A stretch of 64,000 bases of DNA, taken from IMG/VR virus record IMGVR_UViG_3300031787_000001, positions 124,001 to 188,000 of that record, one strand, 5' to 3'. Numbering within the stretch: the first letter of the stretch is position 1; each line of letters starts with the position of its first letter. The position numbers and the translations under genes were made by a program. Shown here in pieces: positions 16,609 through 32,114 of this stretch. A model generated the notes under the pieces. That model was not told where the DNA came from. It saw only the letters and a program-made list of their open reading frames with translations, and made no database searches.

Positions 16609-16658
16609 ATTATCATAAATATTCTGAAAAATTTCCAGAAATTTTTTTTTCAGTTTTA
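16603..16658. repeat. 56-bp direct repeat, copy 2
   Basis: tttcatattatcataaatattctgaaaaatttccagaaa-Tn-cagtttta. Confidence 0.9.
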
Positions 16659-16714
16659 CCCCTATTGATCCGATTTTCAGATTTTTTCCGGAAAAATTTC
16701 TGTTACGGCATTGT

Positions 16715-16867
16715 CCCCCCTTTCTAACCCCCCCTAAAAACCCCTATTTAAGGGGGGATACGGGAGGGGGGTGGTATAGGGGGGAGGGGTATGTAGGGAG
16801 ATAGGGGGGTCGCCAGAGAAATTTTGAATCGGGACGGGGGTGGTCGGTCTGTATCTTGGATAGGGGG
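16715..16867. other. C-run then G-run tract (G-quadruplex-capable) at the block boundary
   Basis: C6, C7, C4 followed by ten G3-G6 runs. Confidence 0.8.
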
Positions 16868-16870
16868 TAT

Positions 16871-16899
16871 AAAAAAAAGGTATCGTTTCCGATACCTTT
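16871..16899 (-). terminator. Intrinsic terminator
   Basis: A-run + AGGTATCG..CGATACCT. Confidence 0.75.
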
Positions 16900-16927
16900 G
16901 TGAACTCATTAGAGTCAATTTAAGACC

Positions 16928-17449
16928 TTATCTTTCTACAATGTAGTGAACACCACCCAAAGTAATTTCCTCAATAGAACTCAACTTAAATGATTGTACC
17001 AACACTCTCCTTTCTTGTGGTTGTCTTGAACTCTCACTCACTTTAACAAGGTAACTTTCAAACAATGTCTTTTCAACTTCGTTACCCTCAAAAATGTAAC
17101 TTACATTCGGTTTGATTTCGTCAAATCTTTCAACTTGTAAGTAGTGGGAATTGTGTTTCTCATTGAACAAAACACACTTTGAAATATGAACACCCACCTT
17201 ATTTTCCTCACTCACAAAATTACCCTCTCCACCCTCTTTTTTATCATTGGTATTCACTCTCGTTTCGTACTCATTTCCAATAAGGTAGTTACATTTGTTC
17301 ACTTTGAACACCTTATCATAATAAGGGTTATTTGTTTTGTTCATACGAACTTTTGTTTTGGAAACGATATTAACAAAGGTTGATTTATCAACATTCATTA
17401 AGATTTCCAATAATTCAGTTTGTCCGATTGTTTTTGTTTCTTTGTTCAT
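16928..17449 (-). CDS. Early hypothetical protein, paralog of 23462..23989; no Ala
   Basis: Shared IVSKTKVRMNK, SESSRQPQE; promoter at 17473-17504. Confidence 0.85.
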   Translation of the reverse strand: MNKETKTIGQTELLEILMNVDKSTFVNIVSKTKVRMNKTNNPYYDKVFKVNKCNYLIGNEYETRVNTNDKKEGGEGNFVSEENKVGVHISKCVLFNEKHNSHYLQVERFDEIKPNVSYIFEGNEVEKTLFESYLVKVSESSRQPQERRVLVQSFKLSSIEEITLGGVHYIVER

Positions 17450-17676
17450 AGTTTTAATTTTTAATTGTTTCACAAATATACACCCTCAAAATGTATATTT
17501 CCAAATTTTTTTTTCCCTTTAACAAAACTTTAACATTTCGGGGGTGAAGGTTCGGGGTGACTTTTTTCGTGGCGAGAACCTACAAAGATACAAAATTATT
17601 TGTTAATAAAAAGTTAAAGTTTTCGTTAACAAAATTTTAAGAAAAAAAATTTGGAGGTGAACCCGTGAAGGTTTGG

Positions 17677-17762
17677 ATTTTCTGTGGCGTGTAGGAAAAA
17701 AACCACAAAGGTACGAAATTATTTGTTAATAAAAAGTTAAAGTTATTATGAGCCAGAGAAAA
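17677..17762. repeat. TGGC inverted element (63-bp spacer); extra half-site 17564-17573
   Basis: ATTTTCTGTGGC..GCCAGAGAAAA; 40-bp direct repeats 17582-17621/17705-17744. Confidence 0.6.
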
Positions 17763-17888
17763 AGTTTTCCGGGTGATCCGGGGTTTACCCGTAAAATTCT
17801 TTAACATAACATTAACATTCGGGTTGATTGTTTTGGGGTGTATAAGGTGTATATTTGTATATCGTTCACAAGTTAAAACTCTACTACT

Positions 17889-18263
17889 ATGTTAAAAAGA
17901 ACTCTCACACTCGGACTTCATCATTGGACTGACAATGACTTAATCCTGAACTTTTATGTTACCAAATTCGGTACTCGGTACATTCATTTGAAAACCGAAG
18001 AAGAACTCTCCAAATTCATCGGTACAACTCCTTGTTCGTTTACCAAACAACAGATGAACTTCCGTTACCTTATGGGGTGTAAATCAAATGTCCTGACTGA
18101 CTACTCCAAACTTCAAAAGTTGGTGTTTGAAATGTTTGATGAAATCTCCTTCTACGAATTTCATCAAATCGTGAAAAAGATAGTTGGACAAGATGAATAC
18201 GAAAGAAATAAATTCTTTGTGGAAAATGGATATAACCCTGAACGAATGATAATGATAAGTTAA
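17889..18263 (+). CDS. Early hypothetical protein; no Ala
   Basis: Promoter upstream, terminator downstream. Confidence 0.8.
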   Translation: MLKRTLTLGLHHWTDNDLILNFYVTKFGTRYIHLKTEEELSKFIGTTPCSFTKQQMNFRYLMGCKSNVLTDYSKLQKLVFEMFDEISFYEFHQIVKKIVGQDEYERNKFFVENGYNPERMIMIS

Positions 18264-18414
18264 TCGGGTTGGAAACTGAAACGAAACCTCAACAGAAATG
18301 TTGGGGTTTTTTATTTCCCACAGAACTCCGTGTTCACCAGATTCGCTGGTGGTAAATTTCTTTGGCTTGTAGAACCAGTTAGAAGATGTGGTTGGGGACA
18401 CCGCATGCGAAAAT

Positions 18415-18475
18415 ATTTCTGTGGCGGTTGTCTTACATAATAGGGGTATTACAGGAGGTTACACGCCAAGGAAAT
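18415..18475. repeat. TGGC inverted element, spacer 39 (extra half-site 18356-18366)
   Basis: ATTTCTGTGGC/GCCAAGGAAAT. Confidence 0.85.
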
Positions 18476-18594
18476 TCCATAATCCCGGATCACCTGTCGT
18501 GTCATCGTATTACACATTCACAAAACTTTAACAAAATAAATTTGGATATAAGGGTATAAATTGGTTAACTTTGACGAAACAAACTTTCAAAGTT

Positions 18595-18876
18595 ATGTCT
18601 TACACAAAAGAAGAAATCAAAATGAACTTGTCAAGAAACCCTAAATGGATAGAAAGAGCGTTGGTTGTCTTACATAACCTCCAAACTACCGAAGAACAAA
18701 TCACAAACGAAACAATCAAAGAGAATGGGGTTGGTTTTAATTCATCGGATAGTCGGTATCTCTCCTATTGTGCGAAATGGATAAAGGGTGGTAATCACTT
18801 AAACGAGAAACACCTCACTAAATGTGGTCAGAAACTCCCAAAGTATTGGAAACAAATACACTCAATGATTAAGTAA
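18595..18876 (+). CDS. Early hypothetical protein
   Basis: ATG downstream of promoter. Confidence 0.8.
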   Translation: MSYTKEEIKMNLSRNPKWIERALVVLHNLQTTEEQITNETIKENGVGFNSSDSRYLSYCAKWIKGGNHLNEKHLTKCGQKLPKYWKQIHSMIK

Positions 18877-18964
18877 CTTCACACTCCACTCAAAACATTA
18901 AACCTCCGATAGTATCGGGGGTTTTTTGTTAGAACTCCGTGTTCACCAGATTCGCTGGTAGATA

Positions 18965-19010
18965 TTTTTTGTGGCGGATAGGTACAGATTAACCTACTCG
19001 CCATGGAAAA
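18965..19010. repeat. TGGC inverted element, spacer 24
   Basis: TTTTTTGTGGC/GCCATGGAAAA. Confidence 0.85.
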
Positions 19011-19128
19011 TTATCCTGATCGCAACAGCGGTTCACGGGGAAAATTCGTTAACAACATTTTAACAATAAAAATTTGGAAATATAAGGTATAATGTCGTAT
19101 ATTTGATAAACAATTAAAAACTACTACA

Positions 19129-19308
19129 ATGGACAAAATCACTCTCACACTCCTTCTCCTTACACTCGGACTAATGGGGTTAACAATGTTATTCTCTCAC
19201 TATATGAGGAATGACAAAATCTCAAACATTTTTCTTCGTGTTTTATTCGGTTTGACAATGATGACATTCACTCTCTTTATGATGGACATTTTTCTCTCAA
19301 ACATTTAA
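19129..19308 (+). CDS. 59-aa two-TM membrane protein (not in ORF track)
   Basis: MDKITLTLLLLTLGLMG.. directly after promoter. Confidence 0.7.
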   Translation: MDKITLTLLLLTLGLMGLTMLFSHYMRNDKISNIFLRVLFGLTMMTFTLFMMDIFLSNI

Positions 19309-19320
19309 TAACTACCAACT

Positions 19321-19659
19321 ATGACACACGAACAACTACACAACTTCGTATCGGAAAAAGGTGAAAGGGAATTTAACCCACAAGAAACCTTACAAGTATT
19401 AACCCACAACAGAACAACATATTGGTCTTGGGGTGTATCTAAACTCCTTAATATGTTTAATAAGGGGTTATGTTTGAAAGTATCAGGACATCACCACAAA
19501 GGTTGGGTAATCATCACACTCGGTTTTACAGACACTTACTCGGTGTTTTATGTATCAAACAATGGTAAAGTCAAAGATGAACAACACTTGGTCTATTTTG
19601 ACGAACTCACCGAAAGGATAGATGATAAAATCGAACGAATACCGATTTACAAACACTAA
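19321..19659 (+). CDS. Early hypothetical protein; no Ala
   Basis: ORF track. Confidence 0.8.
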   Translation: MTHEQLHNFVSEKGEREFNPQETLQVLTHNRTTYWSWGVSKLLNMFNKGLCLKVSGHHHKGWVIITLGFTDTYSVFYVSNNGKVKDEQHLVYFDELTERIDDKIERIPIYKH

Positions 19660-19751
19660 TCACGAAATCGTAATACAGAAACCCTCGACAAAAGTCGGGG
19701 GTTTTTTGTTTTTCCACAGAACTCCGTGTTCACCAGATTCGCTGGTGGTGA

Positions 19752-19805
19752 ATTTATGTGGCGGATCGTATTACAGATAAAGGTGGTATTACACGCCACA
19801 TAAAT
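19752..19805. repeat. TGGC inverted element, spacer 32
   Basis: ATTTATGTGGC/GCCACATAAAT (perfect). Confidence 0.9.
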
Positions 19806-19922
19806 TTTTTGGTTCAGATCCAGGTTTCCACCAGTGAAACTCTTTAACAATAGATTAACAAAATAAATTTGGAATATAAGGTTTAATGATGTATATTTGT
19901 TAAACAATTAAAACATACTACA

Positions 19923-20177
19923 ATGGACAAAAACAAACTAATTAACAGAATTGAAAACATTGGTTTTCTTCTCGGTTGTTTTATCGGTTTATTAACACTT
20001 ATGATGTTGGGGGCGGAACCTACTACTTGGGATGAGGATGGGTTGTACGATTATGAACACCTTTGGGATAAAGGAAATTCGGGTTGGTATGTTATGTGGA
20101 CTTGGGTTTGGTCAGTTGTTACTTTGATTGGGTTGATAGTGGTTAGGTCATTCATTAAGAAAAGTTTAACAAAATAA
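19923..20177 (+). CDS. Small membrane protein
   Basis: Two hydrophobic helices. Confidence 0.75.
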   Translation: MDKNKLINRIENIGFLLGCFIGLLTLMMLGAEPTTWDEDGLYDYEHLWDKGNSGWYVMWTWVWSVVTLIGLIVVRSFIKKSLTK

Positions 20178-20234
20178 ATTTGGTTTTACTCGGTATAAGT
20201 TGTATATTTGTATAAACAATTAAAAACAAAAATT

Positions 20235-20429
20235 ATGAAAAAGTTTTTCAGTTCTATTCTCGGTTTTCACTTGACAATTATGGTTGGGTTGGTTGTTATG
20301 TTTTACTTCAACAACTTGGAAGATAACTACCTAACAATCATTAACAACATTTTCTTGGTTATGATGTCTTTATCCGTTGTGTTATCGGTGGTCTTATGTT
20401 ACTTTGACAAACGAATTTCTAAAAGATAG
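20235..20429 (+). CDS. Small membrane protein
   Basis: Two TM helices; own promoter. Confidence 0.7.
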   Translation: MKKFFSSILGFHLTIMVGLVVMFYFNNLEDNYLTIINNIFLVMMSLSVVLSVVLCYFDKRISKR

Positions 20430-20530
20430 TTGTAGTTTTAATTGTGAACGAAACCACTCCGAAAGGGGTGGTTTTTTTATTTGTGGTATTACACAAAACT
20501 TGAATCGCGGTTCGAGCTGGGATTACACCT

Positions 20531-20576
20531 TTTTCTGTGGCGATCCGTATTACAGAAACCCACTCGCCATAAAAAA
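20531..20576. repeat. TGGC inverted element, spacer 24
   Basis: TTTTCTGTGGC/GCCATAAAAAA. Confidence 0.85.
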
Positions 20577-20683
20577 AGTTTACCAGGACGACAGGTATGA
20601 ATATGGTTTTGAAAAATAAATTTGGAATCAAAAAATATAAGTTGTATATTTGTGTATTATCTAACAAATTAAATTTATATCAA

Positions 20684-21025
20684 ATGAAAGAACAAAATGA
20701 ATGTAATGGAAAAATGTTTCCGAAAGGTTTTTGGTCAAAGAATGGTAAGCCCACACAAAACGCCTTAATGATGTATTTTGTGTATTTGACACATTTACCT
20801 GAAAGTTGGAAAAAGAAAGTAGTACACAAACCCTCACTCGAAAAAACACGACAATACTTTGATGTTGATTATGGTATTGAATGTATGTTAACTTGGGGGA
20901 TACAATTTGGTTGTAAAAATTCTAAAACGTCAGATGAAAGACACCACGCAATGTCTTTGGCTTATCACGACGCTTTGGGTATGATTGGTCAAGGTTACCG
21001 ATACACCGAATTGAAAATTAAGTAG
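20684..21025 (+). CDS. Early hypothetical protein
   Basis: Start reassigned downstream of promoter. Confidence 0.75.
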   Translation: MKEQNECNGKMFPKGFWSKNGKPTQNALMMYFVYLTHLPESWKKKVVHKPSLEKTRQYFDVDYGIECMLTWGIQFGCKNSKTSDERHHAMSLAYHDALGMIGQGYRYTELKIK

Positions 21026-21124
21026 TGTTTGGTTTTAATTGTGAACGAAAAGTCCTCAACGAAAGTTGGGGATTTTTTTTGTCAAGTCACAGACCTCCGT
21101 GTTCACCAGATTCGCTGGTGGACA

Positions 21125-21170
21125 TTTTTTGTGGCTGATCCTATTAGAGAAACCGACAAGCCATAGAAAT
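21125..21170. repeat. TGGC inverted element, spacer 24
   Basis: TTTTTTGTGGC/GCCATAGAAAT. Confidence 0.85.
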
Positions 21171-21278
21171 TTCAGGATGGAAGGTGATCCGAATTCACCT
21201 TCACAAAATTTTAACAAAAAAAATTTGGAATAAGTATGTATATGTTGTATATTTGTATAAATAATTAAAAAAAACATT

Positions 21279-21416
21279 ATGAAAAAGATTTATTCAGTTA
21301 TCGTAGTTATCGTTCTTGTATCATTAACAATGTCCTCTTGTAAAACAAGTGGGTATGGTTGTAAGGGGAAAGAAAGTTGGGGTGGATTGATGAAAAGAAT
21401 TAACAAACCTTATTAG
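21279..21416 (+). CDS. 45-aa lipoprotein (not in ORF track)
   Basis: MKKIYSVIVVIVLVSLTMSS-C lipobox; own promoter and terminator. Confidence 0.7.
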   Translation: MKKIYSVIVVIVLVSLTMSSCKTSGYGCKGKESWGGLMKRINKPY

Positions 21417-21532
21417 TAGTATGGTTGGTTTTAACCCGATGTTTTTACATCGGGTTTTTTATTTTTTTTAACATTTTAGATTTGAAATATAATATTTATT
21501 GTTGTATATTTGTTTAACTAAACCCACTCACT

Positions 21533-21736
21533 ATGAATTTACAATTAAGAACTGAACTAATCGGAAAAAGAATTATGATGATTTTTATGGATGACCCTCA
21601 ACCTATTGAACCAAACACAATGGGTACAATTATCGGAGTTGATGGGTTAAATCAATATCAAGTCAAATGGGATAACGGAAGAAGTTTATCGGTTATACCC
21701 GAAGAAGACCAATTCGTCATTATTGACACAGAGTAG
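21533..21736 (+). CDS. DUF4314-like protein
   Basis: MDDPQPI..GT...VD...QVKWDNGRSL.VIP.ED pattern. Confidence 0.75.
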   Translation: MNLQLRTELIGKRIMMIFMDDPQPIEPNTMGTIIGVDGLNQYQVKWDNGRSLSVIPEEDQFVIIDTE

Positions 21737-21832
21737 TCCGTTCGTTCCCTCATAAAGACAAACCTCAACAGAAATGTTGGGGTTTTTTGTTTCTCCACAG
21801 AACTCCGTGTTCACCATGCTCCCGGTATGTCA

Positions 21833-21878
21833 TTTTCTGTGGCTGATCGTATTACAGGAAGTTAGACGCCAAAGAAAT
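21833..21878. repeat. TGGC inverted element, spacer 24
   Basis: TTTTCTGTGGC/GCCAAAGAAAT. Confidence 0.85.
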
Positions 21879-22270
21879 TTCCAACGACCCGGATCAGGAA
21901 ATCGCCTGTCGGTTATCTTCACAAAGTTTTAACAAAATAAATTTGGAATATAAAGTATAATGATGTATATTTGTTAAACAATTAAAAACTACTACAATGA
22001 AACAAGACAATTCTGACCAATGGATTCAAGGATTAACATTAATAATCTGTTTTATTACACTTGTTATTGTAATCTCCTTAAAGTATTATCTAACGGGTGA
22101 AATCTAAAATAAATTTGGAATATAATAAATAATACCTTATATTTGTGTTATGAAACAGAAATACGAAAATAGATTTTACAAAATTTTACTTTTATTTTGG
22201 ATGATGGTATTCACCTTTGTTTACTTTCAAATAAAATATCAATTAGTTTTCCATTTCTAAAAAACGAAAT

Positions 22271-22423
22271 ATGAAAAATAATTATTTAAGTACAATTAAA
22301 AGAAAGGAACAAGTACAACAAGGAATGTACGATGGTCGTTTCCGTAGTCGTGTGGTGGTAGATAAGAAGAAGAAAGAAAGTAAAAACAAATGTCGTGTTA
22401 AACTTAAAATCAATTATGTATGA
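22271..22423 (+). CDS. 50-aa basic protein (not in ORF track)
   Basis: YDGRFRSRVVVDKKKK; ATGA-coupled to 22420. Confidence 0.6.
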   Translation: MKNNYLSTIKRKEQVQQGMYDGRFRSRVVVDKKKKESKNKCRVKLKINYV

Positions 22424-22629
22424 TACTTGAATTACATTCAGTCGGAAGTGTTATTGACACAGAAACACTATTCACATATCCAATGTTACTAAATGGTGGA
22501 TATGATAAAAATCAAAATGTCCATATTGACGATGTTGATATAGAGTGGTTTCATAGTTTGTCTGATGAAGATTTTGGAACAATAAATGAGTTAATCAATC
22601 AAAGAAACATTAAATCGGAAATAGTATGA
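22420..22629 (+). CDS. Hypothetical protein
   Basis: ORF track. Confidence 0.7.
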   Translation: MILELHSVGSVIDTETLFTYPMLLNGGYDKNQNVHIDDVDIEWFHSLSDEDFGTINELINQRNIKSEIV

Positions 22630-22851
22630 ACAGAGATAGACTAAATAAAATTGAAGAAATTGGTTTTCGTATTACAATGATATTGGTGTTTAGTGTTTTC
22701 ACTATTTGGTTGATTGGAACGATTGTCAAGTTAATAATGATATTGTCGTCATAGTTTAGGTTTGGTTTTAATTGTGAAGAAATCCCTCAACGAAAGTTGG
22801 GGGATTTTCTTTTGGAGGAACTTGAGTCGTGGTTCACCGTGTCTTCAGGGA

Positions 22852-22899
22852 TTTTTTGTGGCTGATCGTATTCAGGTCAACCTCACAAGCCACGGAAAT
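22852..22899. repeat. TGGC inverted element, spacer 26
   Basis: TTTTTTGTGGC/GCCACGGAAAT. Confidence 0.85.
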
Positions 22900-23023
22900 T
22901 TGGTAATCCGAATCACCTGTTTTCCTTCAGGAAATCCTTTCACAAATTTTTAACAAATTATTTTTGGAATAAAAATTTATATGGTGTATATTTGTTATAT
23001 CATTAACAATTAAAACAAACATT

Positions 23024-23191
23024 ATGAAAAAGTTACTTGGTCTTATCGTTATCGTGGTTTTATTTTCTTCTTGTAGTCATTATGTAAACGGAGGTGGTGG
23101 AGGTTGTGGGGTATGGTATCCTCGTAAATTTGAAAAAACAAAGGTGTTCCCTACTCGAAATCATCCAATGTATCGACACTTCGGAGGATAG
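23024..23191 (+). CDS. 55-aa lipoprotein, paralog of 24551 (not in ORF track)
   Basis: MKKLLGLIVIVVLFSS-C..GGGCGVWYPRKFE. Confidence 0.75.
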   Translation: MKKLLGLIVIVVLFSSCSHYVNGGGGGCGVWYPRKFEKTKVFPTRNHPMYRHFGG

Positions 23192-23288
23192 TGTTCTAAA
23201 TAAACCTATCAATAAAAATCCCTGACAATAGTCGGGGATTTTTTTTTCAAACACAAGAAGATGTGATCCGGATCAGCTCGACCGTGGA

Positions 23289-23326
23289 TTTTCTCTGGCT
23301 CAGGTCAACCTACAAGCCAAAGAAAA
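23289..23326. repeat. TGGC inverted element, spacer 16
   Basis: TTTTCTCTGGC/GCCAAAGAAAA. Confidence 0.85.
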
Positions 23327-23461
23327 TTAATAATCCAGATCCCGTCCCTGAAATTTTAACAAAACTTTAACACAAAATCCTTTAACAACATTTTAACAAT
23401 AAAAATTTGGAAATAGGTAGTAATAAGTTGTATATTTGTATAAACAATTAAAACAAATTTT

Positions 23462-23989
23462 ATGAAACAGAAACAAAGAGTATTTGTAACAGAAAGAGAG
23501 TTGTTAATTATCTTAATGAGTATTGACAAACCTACATTCACTCACATTGTATCTAAAACCAAAGTGAGAATGAATAAAGGTGGTAATCCGTATTTTGATA
23601 AAGTTACCAAACACTCAAAAGGTAACTACTTCATCGGTGGTAGTTATGAGGATATGGTAAACACTCGTTGTGTGAAAGAGGGTATTGAACCTAATTTTGA
23701 AAGTCAAGAATGTTCAGTCGGAGAACATATTACCAAGTGTGTTCAGTATAATGAGAACTTACAGAGGTACTATCTTCAATACTTCATCTTCCCTACAAGT
23801 AACATCAAGAGTGAATTTACCTATGAGGGAGATAGTATTGAGAGAGAGTTGTTCCGTAGTTATGAGGTAAAGAGGTCGGAGAGTTCAAGACAACCACAAG
23901 AGAACAAACACAAACCACAATCGTTTATGGTATCTTCCATTGAGGAAATGACACTAAACGGAACGGAATATGTGGTGGTAGGTAGATAA
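23462..23989 (+). CDS. Early hypothetical protein, paralog of 16928..17449; no Ala
   Basis: Full-length similarity. Confidence 0.85.
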   Translation: MKQKQRVFVTERELLIILMSIDKPTFTHIVSKTKVRMNKGGNPYFDKVTKHSKGNYFIGGSYEDMVNTRCVKEGIEPNFESQECSVGEHITKCVQYNENLQRYYLQYFIFPTSNIKSEFTYEGDSIERELFRSYEVKRSESSRQPQENKHKPQSFMVSSIEEMTLNGTEYVVVGR

Positions 23990-24083
23990 GGTATTACACA
24001 ACCGAAATATAAGGTAGTCATTTGACTACCTTTTTTTATGTCCATACCTATCCACGAGTCGTAGACAGAAGACGCGTCCGAAA

Positions 24084-24128
24084 ATTTCTCTGGCGGATCG
24101 GTATTCGTATTACAGGAGCCACGGAAAT
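24084..24128. repeat. TGGC inverted element, spacer 23
   Basis: ATTTCTCTGGC/GCCACGGAAAT. Confidence 0.85.
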
Positions 24129-24250
24129 TTCAACATCTCAGTAGACATCTCCTCGTCATCGTTAAATTCATTATGAAAACATTAACAGAGATTTTTTGGA
24201 GATATAAGGTATTACATAGTATATTTGATAAACAATTAAAAACATATACT

Positions 24251-24472
24251 ATGAACAAAGAAACAATCAAAGTGGTGGTGTGTTATTGTAACTCACTTCC
24301 CAAAGGTTTTATGACACTTCGGAATTTCTTAAACTTTACAAATCGTTCGTGGTGGGATAGTACCAAAACTATTGAGATACCAAAAGAGTATTGGGAGAAT
24401 GTCCACATTGGGAACATAGATAGGTATGTTGAAATGTATGAGAATAACCCTAAGTGGTGGAATGTTGTATAA
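24251..24472 (+). CDS. Hypothetical protein
   Basis: Start downstream of promoter. Confidence 0.7.
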   Translation: MNKETIKVVVCYCNSLPKGFMTLRNFLNFTNRSWWDSTKTIEIPKEYWENVHIGNIDRYVEMYENNPKWWNVV

Positions 24473-24550
24473 ATTTTAACAAATTAAATTTGGAATATAA
24501 ATTTATTTGTTGTATATTTGTTCTATCATTAACAATTAAAACAATACATT

Positions 24551-24745
24551 ATGAAAAAGTTACTCGGTCTTATCGTTGTGGTTATCATCTTTTCAAGTTG
24601 TGGAACAACTTATTACGGAACAAGTGGTGGGAATGGTTGTGGTGTGTGGTTTCCCAAAAAATTTGAAAGGGATAGAAGTCATCAAAGAAGAATGAATTGG
24701 ATAAACAATCCAAATTCGGGTAGGTATCGTAGTGGTGTTCATTAA
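24551..24745 (+). CDS. Small lipoprotein
   Basis: IIFSS-C lipobox; GCGVWFPKKFE. Confidence 0.75.
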   Translation: MKKLLGLIVVVIIFSSCGTTYYGTSGGNGCGVWFPKKFERDRSHQRRMNWINNPNSGRYRSGVH

Positions 24746-24785
24746 AAAAAAATTCTTATCTTCGTTAAACCTTAAATCAATTTTT

Positions 24786-24968
24786 ATGAAACAATTACTT
24801 TTTATCTTGTTCGGTATTAAACCTCAACAAAAATTCAGAGAGTTGAAATTTGAAAAGAAACAATATCCTTTAAGGGAGTTCAATCAAACTGACTTTGAAA
24901 AGTGGTGTAACGAATTTAGAGTTGGTTGTATGGATGGAAAAAGGATAGTTCATTTTGAAATTGGGTAA
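24786..24968 (+). CDS. Hypothetical protein
   Basis: ORF before terminator. Confidence 0.65.
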   Translation: MKQLLFILFGIKPQQKFRELKFEKKQYPLREFNQTDFEKWCNEFRVGCMDGKRIVHFEIG

Positions 24969-25063
24969 TCACTTACCTTTGATAACAAAGTCCTCAACGA
25001 AAGTTGGGGATTTTTTTTGTCCAAAACCCAAGAAGATGTGATCCGGATCAGCTCCATCCGGGA

Positions 25064-25108
25064 TTTTACGTGGCAGATCGGTATTCGTATTACAGAAGCC
25101 ACAAAAAT
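25064..25108. repeat. TGGC inverted element, spacer 23
   Basis: TTTTACGTGGC/GCCACAAAAAT. Confidence 0.85.
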
Positions 25109-25231
25109 TCCACTTCAGGACGACAGGTATGATTCTGATTTTTATTTTAACACTTTTTAACAAAAATAAATTTGGAGTGGAATTGTATATGTTGTATATT
25201 CGTGTATTGTTAAACAATTAAAACTAAACGT

Positions 25232-25456
25232 ATGACAAACTTACAAAGAATTGGTAATTGGTATTCAGTTACAATTAATGATACTAACTACAATGTCCTT
25301 ATTCAAAAAGATGATAATAAGGTTACTTGTGAACCTTCCTCAATTATTGTATTTGACGAAGATTTCAAAGAGGTTGACAAACCAAGTGTGTATGATGATA
25401 TGATAAGTATATTTGAAAAAGTTGACTTCAAATACGATATGATTGATGATGATTAA
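25232..25456 (+). CDS. Hypothetical protein
   Basis: ORF track, promoter upstream. Confidence 0.7.
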   Translation: MTNLQRIGNWYSVTINDTNYNVLIQKDDNKVTCEPSSIIVFDEDFKEVDKPSVYDDMISIFEKVDFKYDMIDDD

Positions 25457-25539
25457 CTAATCTTTAACAAAATAAATTTGGAATGAAAGTTTATATCGTG
25501 TATATTTGTGTATTGTTAAACAATTAAAATTAAAAACAA

Positions 25540-25881
25540 ATGAACTTTGTAATCACACACTACGGAAAAAATGTTGATGAACTCAACGAAAAAGAAAAAG
25601 CATTATTAATGGTTGATACCCTTATGACTACTCTTTTTATGAAAAAGAAAGAAGATGGTCTTGAACCGATTGAGGATATTATGTGTAACTCTTTGAGTAA
25701 CAAAAGAAACGGAATTGTCCTTGACATTATGGGTTGGGAACAAGGGGAAACTCGTGAGGAAAAATTGGAACTCCTTGAAAGAATGGAACAGACAAAGTAT
25801 AGTTATACTAAATTCTTAAAGGATATGAGAATTAATGTTAAGAAACACGATGAAATGGAAAGAGTATCATCATTGAATTAA
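25540..25881 (+). CDS. Hypothetical protein
   Basis: ORF track, promoter upstream. Confidence 0.75.
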   Translation: MNFVITHYGKNVDELNEKEKALLMVDTLMTTLFMKKKEDGLEPIEDIMCNSLSNKRNGIVLDIMGWEQGETREEKLELLERMEQTKYSYTKFLKDMRINVKKHDEMERVSSLN

Positions 25882-25974
25882 TTTTGGATTATCGTTTCAT
25901 ATTTACCCCCGATGTTTTTACATTGGGGGTTTTTGTTTCCCCGAACTCACCTTCACAGACAGCTCCATCGGGGA

Positions 25975-26012
25975 ATTTATCTGGCGGATCGGTTTATGGA
26001 CGCCACGGAAAT
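25975..26012. repeat. TGGC inverted element, spacer 16
   Basis: ATTTATCTGGC/GCCACGGAAAT. Confidence 0.85.
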
Positions 26013-26190
26013 TTCTGGATGGAAGGATGCTCCTTCAGAAAATAAAATTTGTTAATAGTTTTTAACAAAATAAATTTGGAATAGGGGTGTATAAGTTGTA
26101 TATTTGTGTTATGAAGAAACTAAAACCTTACATATTTCCGATTATATTGGTTATGTATGTTTTAATTAAAACATTCTTCAAACATTAATT

Positions 26191-26736
26191 ATGAAAACTT
26201 TAATTATTCACCCGAAAGACAGAACGACTGATTTTTTAAGTGTATTTTACCAAAACATACCCGATAAGGTTGTTATTAGTGGTGGGTACTCAAAAGATGA
26301 AGTTAGGGAAATGATAAAGGACTTTGATAGGGTTATTATGTGTGGACACGGAACTCCCAATGGGTTGATGTCCGTAGGTCAATTCAAAAGTAGTTGGGGG
26401 TTTATCATTGACGAAACCTTTGTTGATGTGTTGAGTGAGAAAACTGAAAATATCTTTATATGGTGTAACGCGGACAAGTTTGTTCGTAAACATAACCTCA
26501 AAGGGTTTTTCAGTGGTATGTTTATTTCCGAAGTCGGAGAAAGTGAGTATTGTGGTGTACCCTCTCCACAAGATATTGTAACGGAAAGTAATGATACATT
26601 CTCAAACATTCTCTCAAAGTATATCAATGACAATGTTTCGGTAATTCACAAAAAAGTTACAAAGGAATATGGTAAATTTTCCGAAACTAACCCGATAGGG
26701 TATTACAATAATAATAGGTTGTACCTTACACAATAG
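26191..26736 (+). CDS. Hypothetical protein, possible caspase/CHAT-like His-Cys fold
   Basis: VIMCGHG..GL and IFIWCNA. Confidence 0.5.
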   Translation: MKTLIIHPKDRTTDFLSVFYQNIPDKVVISGGYSKDEVREMIKDFDRVIMCGHGTPNGLMSVGQFKSSWGFIIDETFVDVLSEKTENIFIWCNADKFVRKHNLKGFFSGMFISEVGESEYCGVPSPQDIVTESNDTFSNILSKYINDNVSVIHKKVTKEYGKFSETNPIGYYNNNRLYLTQ

Positions 26737-26838
26737 TTTTTTGTCATAAATAAAATAACCCCCGATGTTTCTACATTGGGGGTTTTTGTTTTTGGGGTAT
26801 TACAACAAGATGTGTTGGGACGGTGAGCAGATCAGGGA

Positions 26839-26876
26839 ATTTCTGTGGCTGATCGTATTACACTCGCCATAAAAAA
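26839..26876. repeat. TGGC inverted element, spacer 16
   Basis: ATTTCTGTGGC/GCCATAAAAAA. Confidence 0.85.
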
Positions 26877-27096
26877 AGTGGAAGACCAGAGCACCAGTCT
26901 TCAGGAAAAACTTGACTAATTAAAAAAAATGTATTACCTTTGTTTTGGTTTTTCACAGGATATTGGATTAATAACCCCCTTATGTTTCTACATTGAGGGG
27001 TTTTTTGTTTTAACAAAGGTTTAACAATAAATATTTGGAAATATAAGATTTTATTTCGTATATTTGTTCTATCAATAACAATTAAAAATTATTTTT

Positions 27097-27315
27097 ATGA
27101 AAACAAAAATTAAGAACATTGTACTCGCAGTAGTTACTTACTTTATTGGTTTATTCATTGTATCGGTGTTTTTAAGTACATTTCAAACTCCCGATAATCT
27201 TAACCTACCGACTTTTGGTTATGTGTTATTTTACCTTTATTTCTTCGGGGGAATGTATTTGGTGTATCGTATTTTCTTAAAGAAAAAGAAAGAAATTAAA
27301 CCCGAAACATTTTAA
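27097..27315 (+). CDS. Two-TM membrane protein
   Basis: Hydrophobicity. Confidence 0.7.
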   Translation: MKTKIKNIVLAVVTYFIGLFIVSVFLSTFQTPDNLNLPTFGYVLFYLYFFGGMYLVYRIFLKKKKEIKPETF

Positions 27316-27441
27316 TCAAAAAGTAACTTAACCCCCGATATTTCGGGGGTTTTTGTTTTAACAAAATTTTAAGAAAATAAATTTGGATTGTGTTTGTATA
27401 ATTTGTATATTTGATTATCATTAACAATTAAATTTACAATT

Positions 27442-27729
27442 ATGAAAAAGTTATTTGTAATATCATTTGTTGTTTTTCTTTTCAGTTGTTCAGTTCAAAA
27501 AGAGTGTAATGTGAAATTTAACCTTTCAAATTTAGATATTGACTTAAAAGATAGTGTTAATATAAAAGTAGAAAGAATTGTTTATACATATCTCGGAAAT
27601 TTTGTTAGGGGTACTAATAATGTTTGGTATCGTCATCGTGGAATAGTTGATTTTAAGGTTGGTGATAGTGTTGTAGTTTTTAATGAGTTCAAAACTTTAC
27701 CTCCTTGTCCTCGTGAGTGGGGGTTTTAA
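27442..27729 (+). CDS. Lipoprotein
   Basis: FLFS-C lipobox. Confidence 0.7.
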   Translation: MKKLFVISFVVFLFSCSVQKECNVKFNLSNLDIDLKDSVNIKVERIVYTYLGNFVRGTNNVWYRHRGIVDFKVGDSVVVFNEFKTLPPCPREWGF

Positions 27730-27810
27730 GAAAACATTAACAAAATAAATTTGGAATATAAAATTTATTGTTGTATATTTGTGTAACATTAACAATTAAA
27801 ACAAAACACA

Positions 27811-28413
27811 ATGGAAGCGATTAACACAATTACCAAAGGAAACTACAAATTAGAAATTTTTCAAGAGGATAGTCCCGAAAGTCCAAGAAGTTGGGATAAT
27901 TTGGGAACAATGATTTGTTTTCACGGAAGATACAATTTAGGGGATAAACACGACTATAATCATAGAGATTATTCGGGTTGGGAAGAACAGAAAAAAGAAA
28001 TTTCTAAACAAGAGAATGTGTGTGTTATCTTACCCTTGTATCTTTACGACCATAGTGGGATAACAATGAACACAACAGGTTTCAGTTGTGGTTGGGATAG
28101 TGGTCAGGTTGGTTGGATAGTAGTATCAAAGGAAAAAGTGAAAAGTGAATACGGAGTAAAAAGAATTACCAAAGATATTATTGAGAAAGTTACCAATGTG
28201 TTGAAAGGTGAAGTGGAAACATACGACCAATATCTTACGGGTGATGTTTACGGGTATAGAGTATCAAAGATTGAAGTGTGTGATAAGGGTTGTGAACACG
28301 ATGAAGAAGTAGATAGTTGTTGGGGTTATTATGGAGAGGAAAGTGTGGAGGCGGAAGGTAAAAGGATATTGGAGTATTACATTAAGGAAGAAGAAAAGAG
28401 TGTTTGTTCATAG
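27811..28413 (+). CDS. Hypothetical protein
   Basis: 200-aa ORF; PLYLYDHSG, WDSGQVG, DSCWGYYG motifs. Confidence 0.8.
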   Translation: MEAINTITKGNYKLEIFQEDSPESPRSWDNLGTMICFHGRYNLGDKHDYNHRDYSGWEEQKKEISKQENVCVILPLYLYDHSGITMNTTGFSCGWDSGQVGWIVVSKEKVKSEYGVKRITKDIIEKVTNVLKGEVETYDQYLTGDVYGYRVSKIEVCDKGCEHDEEVDSCWGYYGEESVEAEGKRILEYYIKEEEKSVCS

Positions 28414-28514
28414 TTTAGTTTTAGTTGTTAAAGGGAAAAGGGTATCAGAAATGATACCTTTTTTTATTGCCCGAATTTGCGCTTAAGCTCGAACCAGTGC
28501 GCAACAGCTCGTGA

Positions 28515-28551
28515 TTTTCCGTGGCAGATCCGTATTACATGCCACAAAAAA
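28515..28551. repeat. TGGC inverted element, spacer 15
   Basis: TTTTCCGTGGC/GCCACAAAAAA. Confidence 0.85.
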
Positions 28552-28814
28552 ATTACCATCCTGAGTCAGCATTTTCCTTCAGAAAAACATTAACAAATTT
28601 TAACAAATTAAATTTGGAATAAAACTATATTAGTTGTATATTTGTATAAATTAAATTGTATGGAACAAACAATTAAAAAAGAAAAGAAAAAAAGTGAACC
28701 GAAGTATTTTACGGATGAAGATGCGAAAAATGTATTTGTTTTTCAAGAACCATATAAAACAAGTGTAAAAGGTAAACCTATTCAAAAATCAATATCATTA
28801 AAATTTCGTAAACG

Positions 28815-29051
28815 ATGAAAAAAAATCTTACTTATTTGTTATTTAGTTTTGTTATCTTTACTACTATCGGTTGTTCAGTTAGTAGGTGTGGATATAAGAA
28901 TAAGGTATCAAAAAGACAATTAAAAGAAAGTATGAAGTATTCCGATTGGAGATATTATTATCCAACTAAATCAATTACTCAAACATATCAAAATAATCAT
29001 TACAATGTATATGATTACAATACTCAAAGAAAAACTGAAAAAGACAATTAA
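28815..29051 (+). CDS. Putative lipoprotein
   Basis: TTIG-C lipobox. Confidence 0.6.
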   Translation: MKKNLTYLLFSFVIFTTIGCSVSRCGYKNKVSKRQLKESMKYSDWRYYYPTKSITQTYQNNHYNVYDYNTQRKTEKDN

Positions 29052-29244
29052 TAATTGTTTTGTTAATGATACTGGATTGGTTGCGAAAGGTATTATCTAT
29101 CAGTACGAGGGTAAACCTTTCGCGGGTTATGTCATTTATCAAACATACAAATTCTTTTGGATTACTCAATATAAGACCATTGACCACATTGATAGTTTGG
29201 AAACATTAAAAGAAGAATATCCAAACATTAAAGTAATATATTAA
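29005..29244 (+). CDS. Hypothetical protein
   Basis: ORF track. Confidence 0.6.
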   Translation: MYMITILKEKLKKTINNCFVNDTGLVAKGIIYQYEGKPFAGYVIYQTYKFFWITQYKTIDHIDSLETLKEEYPNIKVIY

Positions 29245-29351
29245 AGATTAAGACAAGCAATCAAGTGAAAATTCCCTGATGTTTCTACATCGGGGTTTTT
29301 TGTTTTATGACTGTAAATAGATTACAGTCTGGTCCAGTGCGATCAGGTTGA

Positions 29352-29390: not shown

Positions 29391-29520
29391 TTTTCCTGAT
29401 CCGGATCACCTCCTCCTTCAGTAAATTCATTAAGAAAACTTTAACATAAATTATTTGGAAATATAAACAAAATAGATTTATATTTGTGTACTATCTCACT
29501 AACTATTAAACTCAAAAAAA

Positions 29521-30213
29521 ATGAAAACAAAAACAATTAAAATCCAGACAAAAAGTAAAAGAAAATCAACTTATTCAAACCACGATGGAATGTATAAGAA
29601 TAGGGCTAGAATGAAGATAGTTAATACAATTAAGGAGAGTAACTTAAAAAATAGAAGAATACTATCTTTACCGGCTGATAATTGTATTATTGAAAAACAA
29701 CTTTTTACGAATGTATCTAAACTGATTAAATTTGTTTTATGTGAAAACAATGAACAAGTGTATAAAAAATTGTTAATGAATATCGTTACTAGTAAAACTA
29801 GAATCCCACATTCAATCCTTTCTGGTTCAATCGGTGATGAAATTTACAGAAGTCGGGAGAATGATTATACTGATTTAATACTTGACTATTGTGGTCAAAT
29901 CGGAACATACCATAAAGAAATTGAACACGCAATTAAAAATAATATTGTGTGTGTCGGTGGAACAATATCTATGACATTCAATAAAAGAATTTCGGGAGAT
30001 ACTAATATGAAATTCATTGAAGAAATGGAACGACTTAACCCGAATTTTGATAAGAAAGAGGGTGAGAACAGAACAGAACCAGCCGTTATGACTTTTCTCA
30101 ATCGTGTGTGTGGTATGAATTATCAAATTGTTGAAAGGTATTCGTATAGGGATGATGGGGATGATAAAAAAAGATCACCAATGATGTTGGTTATAGTTCG
30201 TAGAGTATCTTAA
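29521..30213 (+). CDS. Hypothetical protein, possible degenerate class I SAM-methyltransferase fold
   Basis: RILSLP, FVLCEN, LILDYCG, GGTISMTF strand pattern. Confidence 0.45.
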   Translation: MKTKTIKIQTKSKRKSTYSNHDGMYKNRARMKIVNTIKESNLKNRRILSLPADNCIIEKQLFTNVSKLIKFVLCENNEQVYKKLLMNIVTSKTRIPHSILSGSIGDEIYRSRENDYTDLILDYCGQIGTYHKEIEHAIKNNIVCVGGTISMTFNKRISGDTNMKFIEEMERLNPNFDKKEGENRTEPAVMTFLNRVCGMNYQIVERYSYRDDGDDKKRSPMMLVIVRRVS

Positions 30214-30304
30214 CATTATCGTATTACATTTAAGGGGTATCAGAAATGATACCCTTTTTTGTTGCTGTCATCATAGCTCGATCGCAGCGCGCAACAGCTC
30301 GTGA

Positions 30305-30351
30305 TTTTCTGTGGCAAAATCGTATGACACAAAGTGACTTGCCACATAATA
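30305..30351. repeat. TGGC inverted element, spacer 25
   Basis: TTTTCTGTGGC/GCCACATAATA. Confidence 0.85.
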
Positions 30352-30468
30352 TTTTACAGTATTTGGGCTGGGGTCGTGATCCGATCCTTTAACAAAAGAT
30401 TAACGTAAATTATTTGGAAATAAAACTATAATAGTTGTATATTTGTGAAACAATTAAAAACAAATATT

Positions 30469-30759
30469 ATGAACCTTTATTTAGAATTTTCAATGGACTA
30501 TTCAGGGGAGTGTGAAGATTATACACTATTCCTTAACGATGAAGATAAAACCTACGATTATGATTTTGAAGATATTACCAACTACATTAAGAAGTTGGAG
30601 GATAATGTTGAAGGGTTTTTCTTATCAGAACACAGAACATCGGGAACTATTACTATCATTGATGATGTAATGACTATTGAATTTAGAACATTCAACGAAC
30701 CCGATTGGGATGAATTTGATGACCACACAATTACCACAACCCCTATTGATTTTAATTAA
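30469..30759 (+). CDS. Highly acidic hypothetical protein
   Basis: D/E-rich; own promoter. Confidence 0.7.
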   Translation: MNLYLEFSMDYSGECEDYTLFLNDEDKTYDYDFEDITNYIKKLEDNVEGFFLSEHRTSGTITIIDDVMTIEFRTFNEPDWDEFDDHTITTTPIDFN

Positions 30760-30834
30760 TAGGGGATAAAAATAAATTTGGTTTTTAATTAAAATAGTTT
30801 TATCTTTGTTCTTTAATCATTAAAATTTATAATT

Positions 30835-31668
30835 ATGAAATTCGCGTCAACCGACAATCTTAATTGGACAGTTCGTCAGGAGCCTGTTCAAACCGAAAGT
30901 GGTATCGTAATTCCTGGACAACTTGCGATAGTTCGTAACGATACGAATGTTCCTTTGTCAATTATGGCTGATGGTTATCAACCGTATCAAAATCACGAAT
31001 TGGTTGAACTACTTGAAAGGGTATCAAACCAAACCGGTATGGAAATTAAAAAATCGGGGTTATTCGGGGACGGAGAGAAGGTGTTTATTCAGTTGAAGTC
31101 AAACGACCTTAAACTCGGTAATGATAGGGTTGAAGGATATTTGACAGGTATCAATTCCTTTGATGGTTCAACATCACTCGCATTCGGACCCAGTAATGTT
31201 ACTATCAGTTGTACCAACTCGTTCTTCGCCGCGTTTCGTGGTCTTAACACAAAGGTTCGTCATACAAAAAATATGGTTGTTCGTATTGACGACATTTGTA
31301 GAAGTTTAATGGGTGTAGTTGAGGAAGAAAAGAAAATGTTTGATAACATTGTGAAGTTGTCGGAAACTCGTGTCGGAACAAAAAATGTTGATGATGTATT
31401 ACGGACATTATTCAACATTGATAAAAGTGTTAATCTCAAAGATATTGAGGCGATATCAACCGTAACTCAAAATAAAATATCTCGTTTCTATGTTGATTTG
31501 AACGGAGAAATGAAGGAGAAGGGAGATAATCTTTGGGGGTTGTTTAGTGGAGTAACTAAATACACAACTCACTCAATGAGTAAGGAAGACAATACCGAAA
31601 AGAAAATGTTTGGTGTGTACGGAAATCGTGAAAGGAAAATCTTTAACGACTTGGTTGAATTGGTATAA
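30835..31668 (+). CDS. DUF932-family protein
   Basis: YQPYQN, NSFDGS, ISCTN, RHT, NLWGLF..VT.Y motifs. Confidence 0.8.
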   Translation: MKFASTDNLNWTVRQEPVQTESGIVIPGQLAIVRNDTNVPLSIMADGYQPYQNHELVELLERVSNQTGMEIKKSGLFGDGEKVFIQLKSNDLKLGNDRVEGYLTGINSFDGSTSLAFGPSNVTISCTNSFFAAFRGLNTKVRHTKNMVVRIDDICRSLMGVVEEEKKMFDNIVKLSETRVGTKNVDDVLRTLFNIDKSVNLKDIEAISTVTQNKISRFYVDLNGEMKEKGDNLWGLFSGVTKYTTHSMSKEDNTEKKMFGVYGNRERKIFNDLVELV

Positions 31669-32113: not shown

Positions 32114-32114
32114 T

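Follow-up and report, generated by a model that had tools for sequence, protein, structure and literature searches.

Why would a phage build a whole block of proteins almost without alanine? Here, we analyzed a 64-kb window (64,000 nucleotides, positions 124,001 to 188,000 of IMG/VR record IMGVR_UViG_3300031787_000001) from a 287-kb phage of Bacteroidota-type bacteria, in which the first ~12 kb of early genes has lost nearly every GC dinucleotide and many short restriction-type palindromes, so that about 30 proteins have almost no alanine. This pattern looks like defence evasion pushed far enough to change protein composition. The genome of 286.8 kb assembles as a circle, with two assemblies of 286,785 and 286,787 bp that start at different points.

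The depletion is real and its initial counts were accurate. The observed/expected ratio (O/E) of GpC is 0.42 for the whole window and 0.10-0.31 in the 2-kb windows from 16 to 28 kb, whereas CpG is at 0.86. From promoter to terminator, the 16 early transcription units (17815-29303, plus strand, about 9.4 kb, about 27 small genes) hold 17 GpC where about 220 are expected; 15 of these are Ala codons, one lies at a codon junction and one is non-coding. This matches the initial annotation, which had counted about 17 GC dinucleotides outside the spacers. Alanine accounts for 15 of 2,443 early codons (0.61%) as compared to 410 of 14,805 (2.77%) in the rest of the window (Fisher p 2.5e-13). The four ORFs named as alanine-free (16928, 17889, 19321, and 23462) indeed have no Ala, and 13 of the 15 Ala codons lie in CGC or GCG context, exactly as claimed.

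Is this a loss of alanine or a loss of the dinucleotide? GpC at codon positions 2-3 and 3-1 numbers 1 in the early block against 98 elsewhere (p 8e-6). The codons TGC (0/43), AGC (0/64), GGC (0/153), and CGC (0/31) are not used, although other C-ending codons run at 30-60%. Shuffling of synonymous codons gives 43 +/- 5 non-Ala GpC against 1 observed. The caveat of the initial annotation that the whole window is somewhat GpC-poor is correct but understated, as every gene in the window avoids non-Ala GpC; the late blocks have 48 against 119 in shuffles (z -9.5), and the fade noted after about 29 kb is gradual. The purge also extends to untranslated regions and to terminator stems, which hold 4 GpC against 41 expected. 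GC-centred palindromes cannot explain the signal alone. Once dinucleotide content is allowed for, AGCT, TGCA, GCGC, and CGCG are not extra-depleted window-wide (GGCC is mildly so, 0.60), and all 16 NGCN contexts are low. The signal thus belongs to the dinucleotide and not to any one tetramer, with the self-complementary DGCH as the approximate avoided word, as initially proposed. The DGCH preference, i.e., extra GCG codons and extra C before Ala codons, is seen in this window and in four other purged phages, but is absent in four normal relatives.

The block opens with a divergently transcribed gene of 173 aa (16928-17449, minus strand), which has no Ala and no GpC and is a paralogue of the 175-aa Ala-free early protein encoded at 23462-23989 (plus strand). 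This family occurs in every GpC-purged relative with 0 Ala, while the homologue in the normal-GpC phage L011 has 10 Ala in 181 aa as read from the alignment. The structure model of the 175-aa paralogue (pLDDT 84) finds no PDB fold match. A 181-aa early protein (26191-26736, plus strand) with 1 Ala is conserved in the purged relatives L019, L023, and L024 and has invariant GHG and WCNAD motifs; its structure model (pLDDT 88) gives weak fold matches only, namely flavodoxin-like, gingipain, and caspase. The 200-aa early protein at 27811-28413 (plus strand; phrog_6186), which has more than 7,900 homologues, served as comparative marker. The Ala count of its orthologue (0-8) tracks the GpC O/E of its contig. 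GpC is avoided at synonymous sites in at least four related phage lineages, but not in other relatives. Sister phage L010 has the same architecture, with a GpC O/E of 0.04-0.11 over 10 kb and 0.30% Ala.

Phages often track the dinucleotide usage of their hosts, and a relative (L021) has CpG at 0.30, like many low-G+C bacteria. Mimicry of a GpC-poor host or drift in base composition is nevertheless the least likely explanation, as all 80 bacterial loci carrying the closest homologues of Gmd, including those of Saprospiraceae, Chitinophagales, and Pyrinomonadaceae, have a GpC O/E of 0.75-1.63, and the depletion varies 5-fold within one genome. It is already contradicted, unless the true host has a genome-wide GpC O/E below 0.5.

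Do the early genes avoid only GpC? They have also lost GATC, CATG, CTAG, ACGT, TCGA, GANTC, ACNGT, and CTNAG. In codon-shuffle tests of the early coding sequence, GATC was observed 0 times against 17.5 expected, CATG 0 against 18.9, ACGT 1 against 20.6, GANTC 1 against 22.7, and ACNGT 0 against 15.2, and CTAG is likewise absent from the coding sequence, whereas the control words GTAC (20 against 23) and TTAA (66 against 71) sit at expectation. Palindromic 4-mers have a median O/E of 0.15 in early units against 1.05 for other 4-mers (p 1e-4), and interrupted palindromes are also lost. This avoidance is strongest in the early block, intermediate in the middle block, and weak or absent in the late blocks, as is also apparent in a 1-kb profile along the window. 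The early-promoter region continues at 29454-43090 (plus strand) with an intermediate purge. Here, palindromes stay scarce to about 41 kb, while GpC returns to the window level (about 0.4-0.5). In the late blocks, GATC is at 86 against 86 and GANTC is also at expectation, yet non-Ala GpC remains depleted, so that the GpC purge is not only an effect that precedes counter-defence. CTAG, ACGT, TCGA, and CATG are low in the window even after allowing for dinucleotide content, and sister phages L010, L019, L023, and L024 have no GATC at all in about 20 kb each. The graded loss of these words, with control words at expectation, is the signature of restriction avoidance on double-stranded DNA. Classical palindrome avoidance in phages, however, acts on words of 4-6 bp and is usually uniform along the genome, whereas here the strongest signal is a 2-bp word and is graded by gene class.

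The GpC left between genes sits mostly at three fixed positions of a repeated element (18319-41832, plus strand) that lies between each terminator and the next promoter, with 15 spacers from 18.3 to 30.4 kb and more up to 41.8 kb. The element is an inverted repeat, TTTCTGTGGC-N(13-30)-GCCACAGAAA, with a hairpin upstream, and holds most of the remaining GpC of the block and all of its GATC. Forty-nine of 66 spacer GpC occupy the three fixed positions, and GATC lies 3 nt after the TGGC GpC in 10 of 15 copies. Other spacer positions have 17 GpC against about 90 expected. The intergenic repeats keep 49 GpC and 22 GATC inside the supposedly exposed DNA, which speaks against restriction avoidance and fits it only if these positions are protected or indispensable.

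An alternative hypothesis is avoidance at the RNA level, in which a host toxin or a phage host-shutoff endoribonuclease cuts RNA at GpC and phage transcripts, most strictly the early ones, escape by lacking the word. The purge of untranslated regions, terminator stems, and all three codon phases is in accordance with this view, and a cost per site per transcript explains a graded, partial purge in late genes. Precedents exist, as MqsR cuts G^CU (PMC8546651) and ACA is under-represented in RNA phages exposed to MazF (PMC12151602), and transcripts lacking a 3-nt word are immune. However, the known effects are weak (0.83 for ACA), involve non-palindromic words, and concern RNA genomes. Moreover, the same early genes lose many palindromes, which is a signature of double-stranded DNA recognition, the tolerated flanks are symmetric (C before and G after) as expected for a self-complementary DNA word, and no RNase-like early protein was found by profile and fold searches. 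That spacers keep GpC does not hold as an argument against this hypothesis, since free spacer positions are purged too. GpC and DGCH are self-complementary, so that their depletion does not point to one strand. We consider an RNA-level agent possible but unlikely.

Could the agent belong to the phage itself? The middle block encodes a 305-aa C5 cytosine DNA methyltransferase (45110-46027, plus strand; PF00145, E 1e-32), whose best solved relatives are the Dnmt3A/B catalytic domains (E 4e-19). It was initially proposed as an alternative that the phage avoids its own GpC modification. In such a reading, the C5 methyltransferase would mark GpC and the phage would shed sites to escape methylation-dependent (type IV) restriction. 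A related possibility is that a GpC-directed phage nuclease degrades host DNA while the phage survives by lacking or methylating the sites, as has been proposed analogously for T5 protein A1, a nuclease whose sites are absent from first-step-transfer DNA (10.1101/866236, section 3.2.2). The tolerance of GpC that overlap CpG would fit masking by a CpG methylase. Chlorella viruses pair CviJI (RGCY) with a methylase and encode the GpC methylase M.CviPI; these eukaryotic-virus enzymes are the only ones known to us whose specificity approaches a bare GpC, and RGCY words are among the most depleted in the late blocks. Yet the tolerated contexts (CGCN, NGCG) match neither RGCY nor the relaxed CviJI pattern, and no homologue was found in the window. 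Avoidance of the phage's own GpC methylation has no support, because no specificity can be read from the methyltransferase sequence, its 35-38% identical homologues sit in phages with a GpC O/E of 1.08-1.27, and no close homologue turned up in any sequence other than this phage's own. No nuclease was recognized in the block, and losing the methylase would be simpler than purging thousands of sites. A phage-borne agent is likewise possible but unlikely.

The presence of a methyltransferase also raises the possibility of mutational decay, in which methylated or otherwise deamination-prone cytosines in GpC turn into GpT and ApC, as CpG does in vertebrates, and weakly constrained early genes lose Ala by drift. 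In early units, ApC (1.32) and GpT (1.15) are raised, as compared to 1.04 and 1.00 in the window, and early proteins have about 2 points more Val and slightly more Thr. In Gmd, which keeps 12 Ala, all at columns where most of 24 bacterial homologues have Ala (62-100%), five other majority-Ala columns became Ser (4) or Thr (1), never Val. Synonymous GpC density differs more than 10-fold between early genes and the rest, which a uniform mutation bias does not predict, and the parallel palindrome purge is not mutational. Decay is thus very unlikely. The genome-wide depletion of a single self-complementary dinucleotide with effects on codon use is shared with CpG suppression, caused by methylation decay in vertebrates or by CpG-sensing ZAP acting on RNA viruses. 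Here, however, the dinucleotide and the domain of life differ, the depletion reaches an O/E of 0.08 and removes an amino acid, and no GpC sensor or GpC methylase is known in bacteria.

We therefore favor, with moderate confidence, that the block is the host-transcribed early gene array of the phage, from which selection has removed the recognition words of DNA-cutting host defences wherever the sequence was free to change. Transcription by unmodified host RNA polymerase is a sequence-level inference from 32 matches to the Bacteroidota promoter consensus (TTTGG...TAnnTTTG), one before each unit; each unit also ends in an intrinsic terminator. Our analysis directly shows the loss of GpC from synonymous positions, codon junctions, untranslated regions, terminator stems, and variable parts of the intergenic repeat, the loss of a dozen short palindromes from the same genes, the early-to-late gradient of the palindrome purge in contrast to a GpC purge that holds across the window, the survival of GpC preferentially in CGC and GCG, and the covariation of alanine content with GpC O/E across related phages. 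It remains inference that this DNA is exposed to host nucleases before the counter-defence proteins of the phage exist, and that a GpC-centred, two-fold symmetric DNA recognition, either one enzyme with a very short site or many GC-centred systems, is a threat never fully neutralized. In this view, each GpC would carry a cost everywhere in the genome, highest in the first 12 kb, and alanine loss would be a side effect because every Ala codon begins with GC. No enzyme known to us recognizes DGCH. Furthermore, a partial purge, with about 8-10 GpC per kb left outside the block, gives little protection against an enzyme for which one cut is lethal, and cleavage per site must therefore be inefficient or partly masked.

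The initial interpretation, escape from restriction in first-injected DNA before anti-defence genes act, is hence only partly supported: the purge is selective and strongest in the early block, and restriction avoidance gains independent support from the palindromes, but first entry of this DNA is assumed by analogy to phage T5. The T5 first-step-transfer region is likewise a block of about 10 kb with many small genes driven by host-type promoters and with conserved non-coding regions rich in inverted repeats and palindromes, and restriction sites matter only inside it, as EcoRI sites in first-step-transfer DNA are cleaved while those elsewhere are insensitive (10.1101/866236, section 4.1.5). 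The T5 evidence, however, concerns individual 6-bp sites, without a dinucleotide-level purge, loss of an amino acid, or residual genome-wide avoidance, and two-step injection is demonstrated for T5 alone of the two phages. In the T7-type leading region of Autographiviridae, location of a motif in the early-entering, highly variable, anti-defence-encoding region decides sensitivity to Type I restriction (PMC12455610). That case involves a single long motif, whereas a dozen short palindromes and one dinucleotide are involved in this jumbo phage. No early protein could be identified as an anti-restriction factor, as early proteins had no Pfam hits above threshold, PHROGs matches only to families of unknown function, and no convincing fold match. 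Genes of the continuing early-promoter region (29454-43090) include DUF932, SprT-like, a winged-helix regulator, DUF6915, and GP88; apart from the regulator, these resemble gene sets of plasmid leading regions.

A more far-reaching but unlikely possibility is that a defence factor, or a phage weapon, recognizes the bare GpC dinucleotide (DGCH) in nucleic acid as a prokaryotic counterpart of CpG sensing in animals, driving a whole clade of environmental jumbo phages to purge GpC genome-wide and to build early proteins without alanine. The Dnmt3-like methylase of the phage might then mask the unavoidable sites that overlap CpG.

If restriction avoidance in first-exposed DNA holds, this is the most extreme case known to us in which defence evasion reshapes protein chemistry, with about 30 proteins built with almost no alanine and this state maintained in several phage lineages while the genes themselves turn over. 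It would provide a purely sequence-based way to find the first-exposed, anti-defence part of uncultured jumbo phage genomes. It would also predict an undiscovered nuclease, sensor, or modification with GpC-level specificity in aquatic Bacteroidota-type hosts or their phages, with the Ala-free early proteins as a natural set of candidate counter-defence factors.

The genome of this phage (IMGVR_UViG_3300031787_000001, 286,785 bp; 31.5% G+C in the window) was recovered in a second assembly of 286,787 bp that starts at a different point; it therefore assembles as a circle and is probably complete. A megablast search against GenBank phages returned no match. From about 17.6 to 43 kb, the + strand carries 32 copies of the Bacteroidota promoter consensus (TTTGG, then TAnnTTTG), each preceding one or a few small genes that end in a predicted intrinsic terminator, and a repeated element lies between each terminator and the next promoter. 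Upstream of this array, between the left block and the first early gene, an ORF-poor stretch of about 50% G+C (16609-16927) is made of C-runs and G-runs with only 2 GpC. A search of 16-50 kb against Rfam gave a single sub-threshold hit, and a tRNA scan found no tRNA gene in the 64 kb, which leaves no basis for an explanation through tRNA-Ala. A CCA-adding/poly(A) polymerase-type enzyme is nevertheless present. A GDP-mannose 4,6-dehydratase and an epimerase (57313-59177 (-) and 2612-3790 (-)) are up to 79% identical to Pyrinomonadaceae (Acidobacteriota) and 72-77% identical to Saprospiraceae (Bacteroidota) enzymes. A Bacteroidota host, perhaps in Saprospiraceae or Chitinophagales, is presumed.

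The observation made in the initial annotation, a GpC desert with near loss of alanine, is confirmed in every particular. Observed/expected (O/E) GpC is 0.42 for the whole window, as compared to 0.86 for CpG, and falls to 0.10-0.31 in the 2-kb windows between 16 and 28 kb. Sixteen transcription units between 17815 and 29303 hold 17 GpC where about 220 are expected; 15 of these are Ala codons, one spans a codon junction and one is non-coding. Early proteins contain 15 Ala in 2,443 residues (0.61%), against 410 in 14,805 (2.77%) elsewhere (p 2.5e-13), and the four proteins that had been singled out as Ala-free (starting at 16928, 17889, 19321 and 23462) indeed have none. TGC, AGC, GGC and CGC codons are absent (0 of 43, 64, 153 and 31, respectively), although other C-ending codons are used at 30-60%. 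Shuffling synonymous codons while keeping protein sequences and codon usage gave 43 +/- 5 non-Ala GpC, against 1 observed. Thirteen of the 15 Ala codons are in CGC or GCG context, as claimed. One early gene (20597-21025, +) holds 5 of the 17 non-spacer GpC of the block, including two of the four in DGCH context, and may be a recent arrival that has not yet been purged.

The purge is wider than the early block. In all 131 called genes, GpC at codon positions 2-3 and 3-1 is rare, and about 82% of coding GpC are Ala codons. The late blocks have 48 non-Ala GpC against 119 in shuffles (z -9.5). Avoidance of a single GC-centred tetramer can be rejected, as all 16 NGCN contexts are low and, once dinucleotide content is allowed for, AGCT (0.85), TGCA (0.82), GCGC (1.67) and CGCG (1.30) are not further depleted, with only GGCC mildly so (0.60). 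The signal therefore belongs to the dinucleotide. Terminator stems obtain their G:C pairs from runs of C and G and contain 4 GpC against 41 expected. Remaining Ala codons favour GCG 2.3-fold (p 7e-9) and a preceding C 1.6-fold; the same preference appears in four other purged phages pooled (odds ratios 1.9 and 1.7) and is absent in four normal relatives. The avoided word is DGCH, which is its own reverse complement.

Comparison with related phage contigs (designated L010 to L026) indicates a lineage trait rather than a host signature. Sister phage L010, with 65% identity in an early protein, has the same layout, and its early 10 kb has GpC O/E 0.07-0.11, or 0.04 outside the spacers, and 0.30% Ala. 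The 200-aa early protein (27811-28413) has more than 7,900 homologues, of which the 120 closest carry 0-8 Ala. Contigs encoding orthologues with 0-2 Ala (L019, L020, L023, L024) have GpC O/E 0.36-0.47 and 1.6-2.0% Ala, whereas contigs encoding orthologues with 5-8 Ala (L025, L026, L021, L022) have GpC O/E 0.85-1.01 and 3.7-6.2% Ala. In the latter group (L021 and L022, contigs Ga0568924_000023 and ERZ27247984 k141_567000), a phage encoding a 70%-identical orthologue has normal GpC (1.0) but a CpG O/E of 0.30 across 20 kb; related phages are therefore depleted in different self-complementary dinucleotides. Mimicry of a GpC-poor host is contradicted by 80 bacterial loci around the closest Gmd homologues, all of which have GpC O/E 0.75-1.63. 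The phage Gmd keeps 12 Ala, all at columns where most of 24 bacterial homologues have Ala (62-100%), while five other majority-Ala columns became Ser (four) or Thr (one). The 173/175-aa family has no Ala in six members from purged phages and 10 in its homologue from a normal phage. Equally Ala-free homologues elsewhere had been set as a refuting condition, and these comparisons do not refute the finding.

Avoidance in the early genes extends to a general desert of palindromes. In early coding sequence, GATC (0 against 17.5 in shuffles), CATG (0 against 18.9), CTAG (0 against 6.6), ACGT (1 against 20.6), TCGA (4 against 23.4), GANTC (1 against 22.7), ACNGT (0 against 15.2) and CTNAG (1 against 14.2) are lacking or nearly so, whereas GTAC, TCNGA, CANTG and TTAA are at expectation. 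Palindromic tetramers have a median O/E of 0.15 in early units, against 1.05 for the rest. The middle block is intermediate, and in the late blocks GATC is 86 against 86 and GANTC 79 against 91. A 1-kb profile shows the palindrome-poor zone running from about 17 to 41 kb, which matches the extent of the early promoters, with the GpC and alanine desert as its first half. L010 shows the same two tiers: GATC, CCGG and CTAG are absent everywhere, while CCNGG, GGNCC and CTNAG are depleted only in its early genes. GATC is completely absent, spacers included, from about 20 kb of each of L010, L019, L023 and L024, while the window phage has 166 GATC (O/E 0.89) and lacks it only in its early genes. We also considered that early genes are purged because they shuttle between phages as pooled cassettes, but each phage's early genes follow that phage's own avoidance spectrum; L010, for example, keeps CATG and ACGT. 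Such a graded loss of symmetric words is the expected mark of type II restriction acting on DNA that is exposed before counter-defence is in place. Known cases are T5, where only sites in first-step-transfer DNA are cleaved (10.1101/866236, section 4.1.5), and Autographiviridae, where motif location in the leading region decides restriction (PMC12455610).

The spacers between terminator and next promoter appear at first to contradict selection at the DNA level. Their raw GpC O/E is 0.6-1.4 in five phages and all 22 GATC of the early block lie in them, as would be expected if selection acted only on transcripts. This argument was rejected because, position by position, 49 of 66 spacer GpC sit at three fixed places of the repeat, namely the TGGC arm, the GCCA arm, and one 15-26 nt upstream; GATC follows the TGGC GpC by 3 nt in 10 of 15 copies. 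Only 17 GpC occupy other positions, against about 90 expected. The spacers are therefore purged wherever they are free to vary, which contrasts with the unexplained retention, next to every early promoter, of an element that needs GpC and GATC. About 20 copies of this element lie within 18319-41832 (e.g., 18968-19005, 21128-21165, 33102-33130 and 41802-41830). It is an inverted repeat, TTTCTGTGGC-N(13-30)-GCCACAGAAA, with a fixed TGGCNGATC motif and an upstream hairpin, and its variable loop length suggests a hairpin or cruciform rather than a fixed-spacing operator. Sister phages have different GC-containing motifs at the same place (CGCCAAAGAAA in L010, TTTGCAAC in L023), and in L010 the element is reduced to one motif with a single GpC. 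The genes just after the desert (29454-44583, +), including DUF932, SprT-like, DUF6915, GP88, L5 gp82-like and DUF1281_C/Api92-like genes and a winged-helix regulator (35801-36211), resemble the sets found in leading regions of conjugative elements; the regulator is a candidate binder of the intergenic repeat.

No nuclease or RNase was recognized among the conserved early proteins examined: searches gave nothing above threshold in Pfam and only families of unknown function in PHROGs. The two paralogues of the 173/175-aa family at 16928-17449 (-) and 23462-23989 (+) are 53% identical and conserved in all purged relatives, with one always divergently transcribed at the start of the early array; the structure model is confident (pLDDT 84) but has no match among solved structures in the PDB. 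The 181-aa protein at 26191-26736 (+) has invariant GHG and WCNAD motifs, a possible His/Cys pair and a predicted alpha/beta fold that only weakly resembles flavodoxin-like proteins and caspase or gingipain proteases. Several early ORFs of 45-95 aa (21279-21416, 23024-23191, 24551-24745, 27442-27729, 28815-29051 and 31928-32113, all +) begin MKK, continue with a hydrophobic stretch and then a Cys (lipoprotein-like signal), followed by Gly/Cys-rich tails, and look like a family of small secreted or lipid-anchored early proteins.

The best-supported account is DNA-level avoidance of nuclease recognition words, strongest in the DNA that would be exposed or expressed first, with an additional GpC-centred recognition that costs the phage something at every site throughout the genome; alanine loss would be a side effect. 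The depletion of these words, its gradation between gene classes and its recurrence in related phages are established by the counts, whereas the nuclease, the order of DNA entry and the cost per site are inferred from sequence alone. The interpretation in the initial annotation, escape from GC-containing restriction sites before anti-defence genes act or else avoidance of the phage's own GpC modification, is only partly supported, the second alternative having no support. The symmetric flanks of tolerated sites and the parallel loss of palindromes favour a double-stranded DNA target over RNA. An endoribonuclease that cuts at GpC is a rival. Deamination decay is argued against by the 10-fold difference in synonymous GpC between gene classes. 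However, no enzyme with DGCH specificity is known to us, and a partial genome-wide purge helps only if cleavage per site is inefficient or masked. One possible masking route rests on the tolerated contexts, which are those in which GpC overlaps a CpG, and on a 305-aa C5 cytosine methyltransferase (45110-46027, +) with a short target-recognition region, whose best solved relatives are the catalytic domains of Dnmt3A/B, CpG methylases of the Dnmt3 family. Sequence does not reveal its specificity, and its distribution is uninformative on a link to the purge: its nearest homologues in other phages (cyanophage S-CBS2, Flavobacterium and Bacteroides phages) are 40% identical or less, its distant homologues sit in phages with normal GpC, and no close homologue was found in any other phage. 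A GpC-directed nuclease or modification belonging to the phage itself is a further rival.

Region-limited restriction avoidance in early-entering DNA is already known. The present case differs in its breadth of a dozen words, in a dinucleotide-level component reaching O/E 0.08, in the persistence of that component genome-wide, as judged from the window, and across several lineages, and in its visible effect on the proteome. Its interest is high because it points to an unidentified GpC-level activity and gives a sequence-only marker for the region inferred to be first exposed in uncultured jumbo phages.
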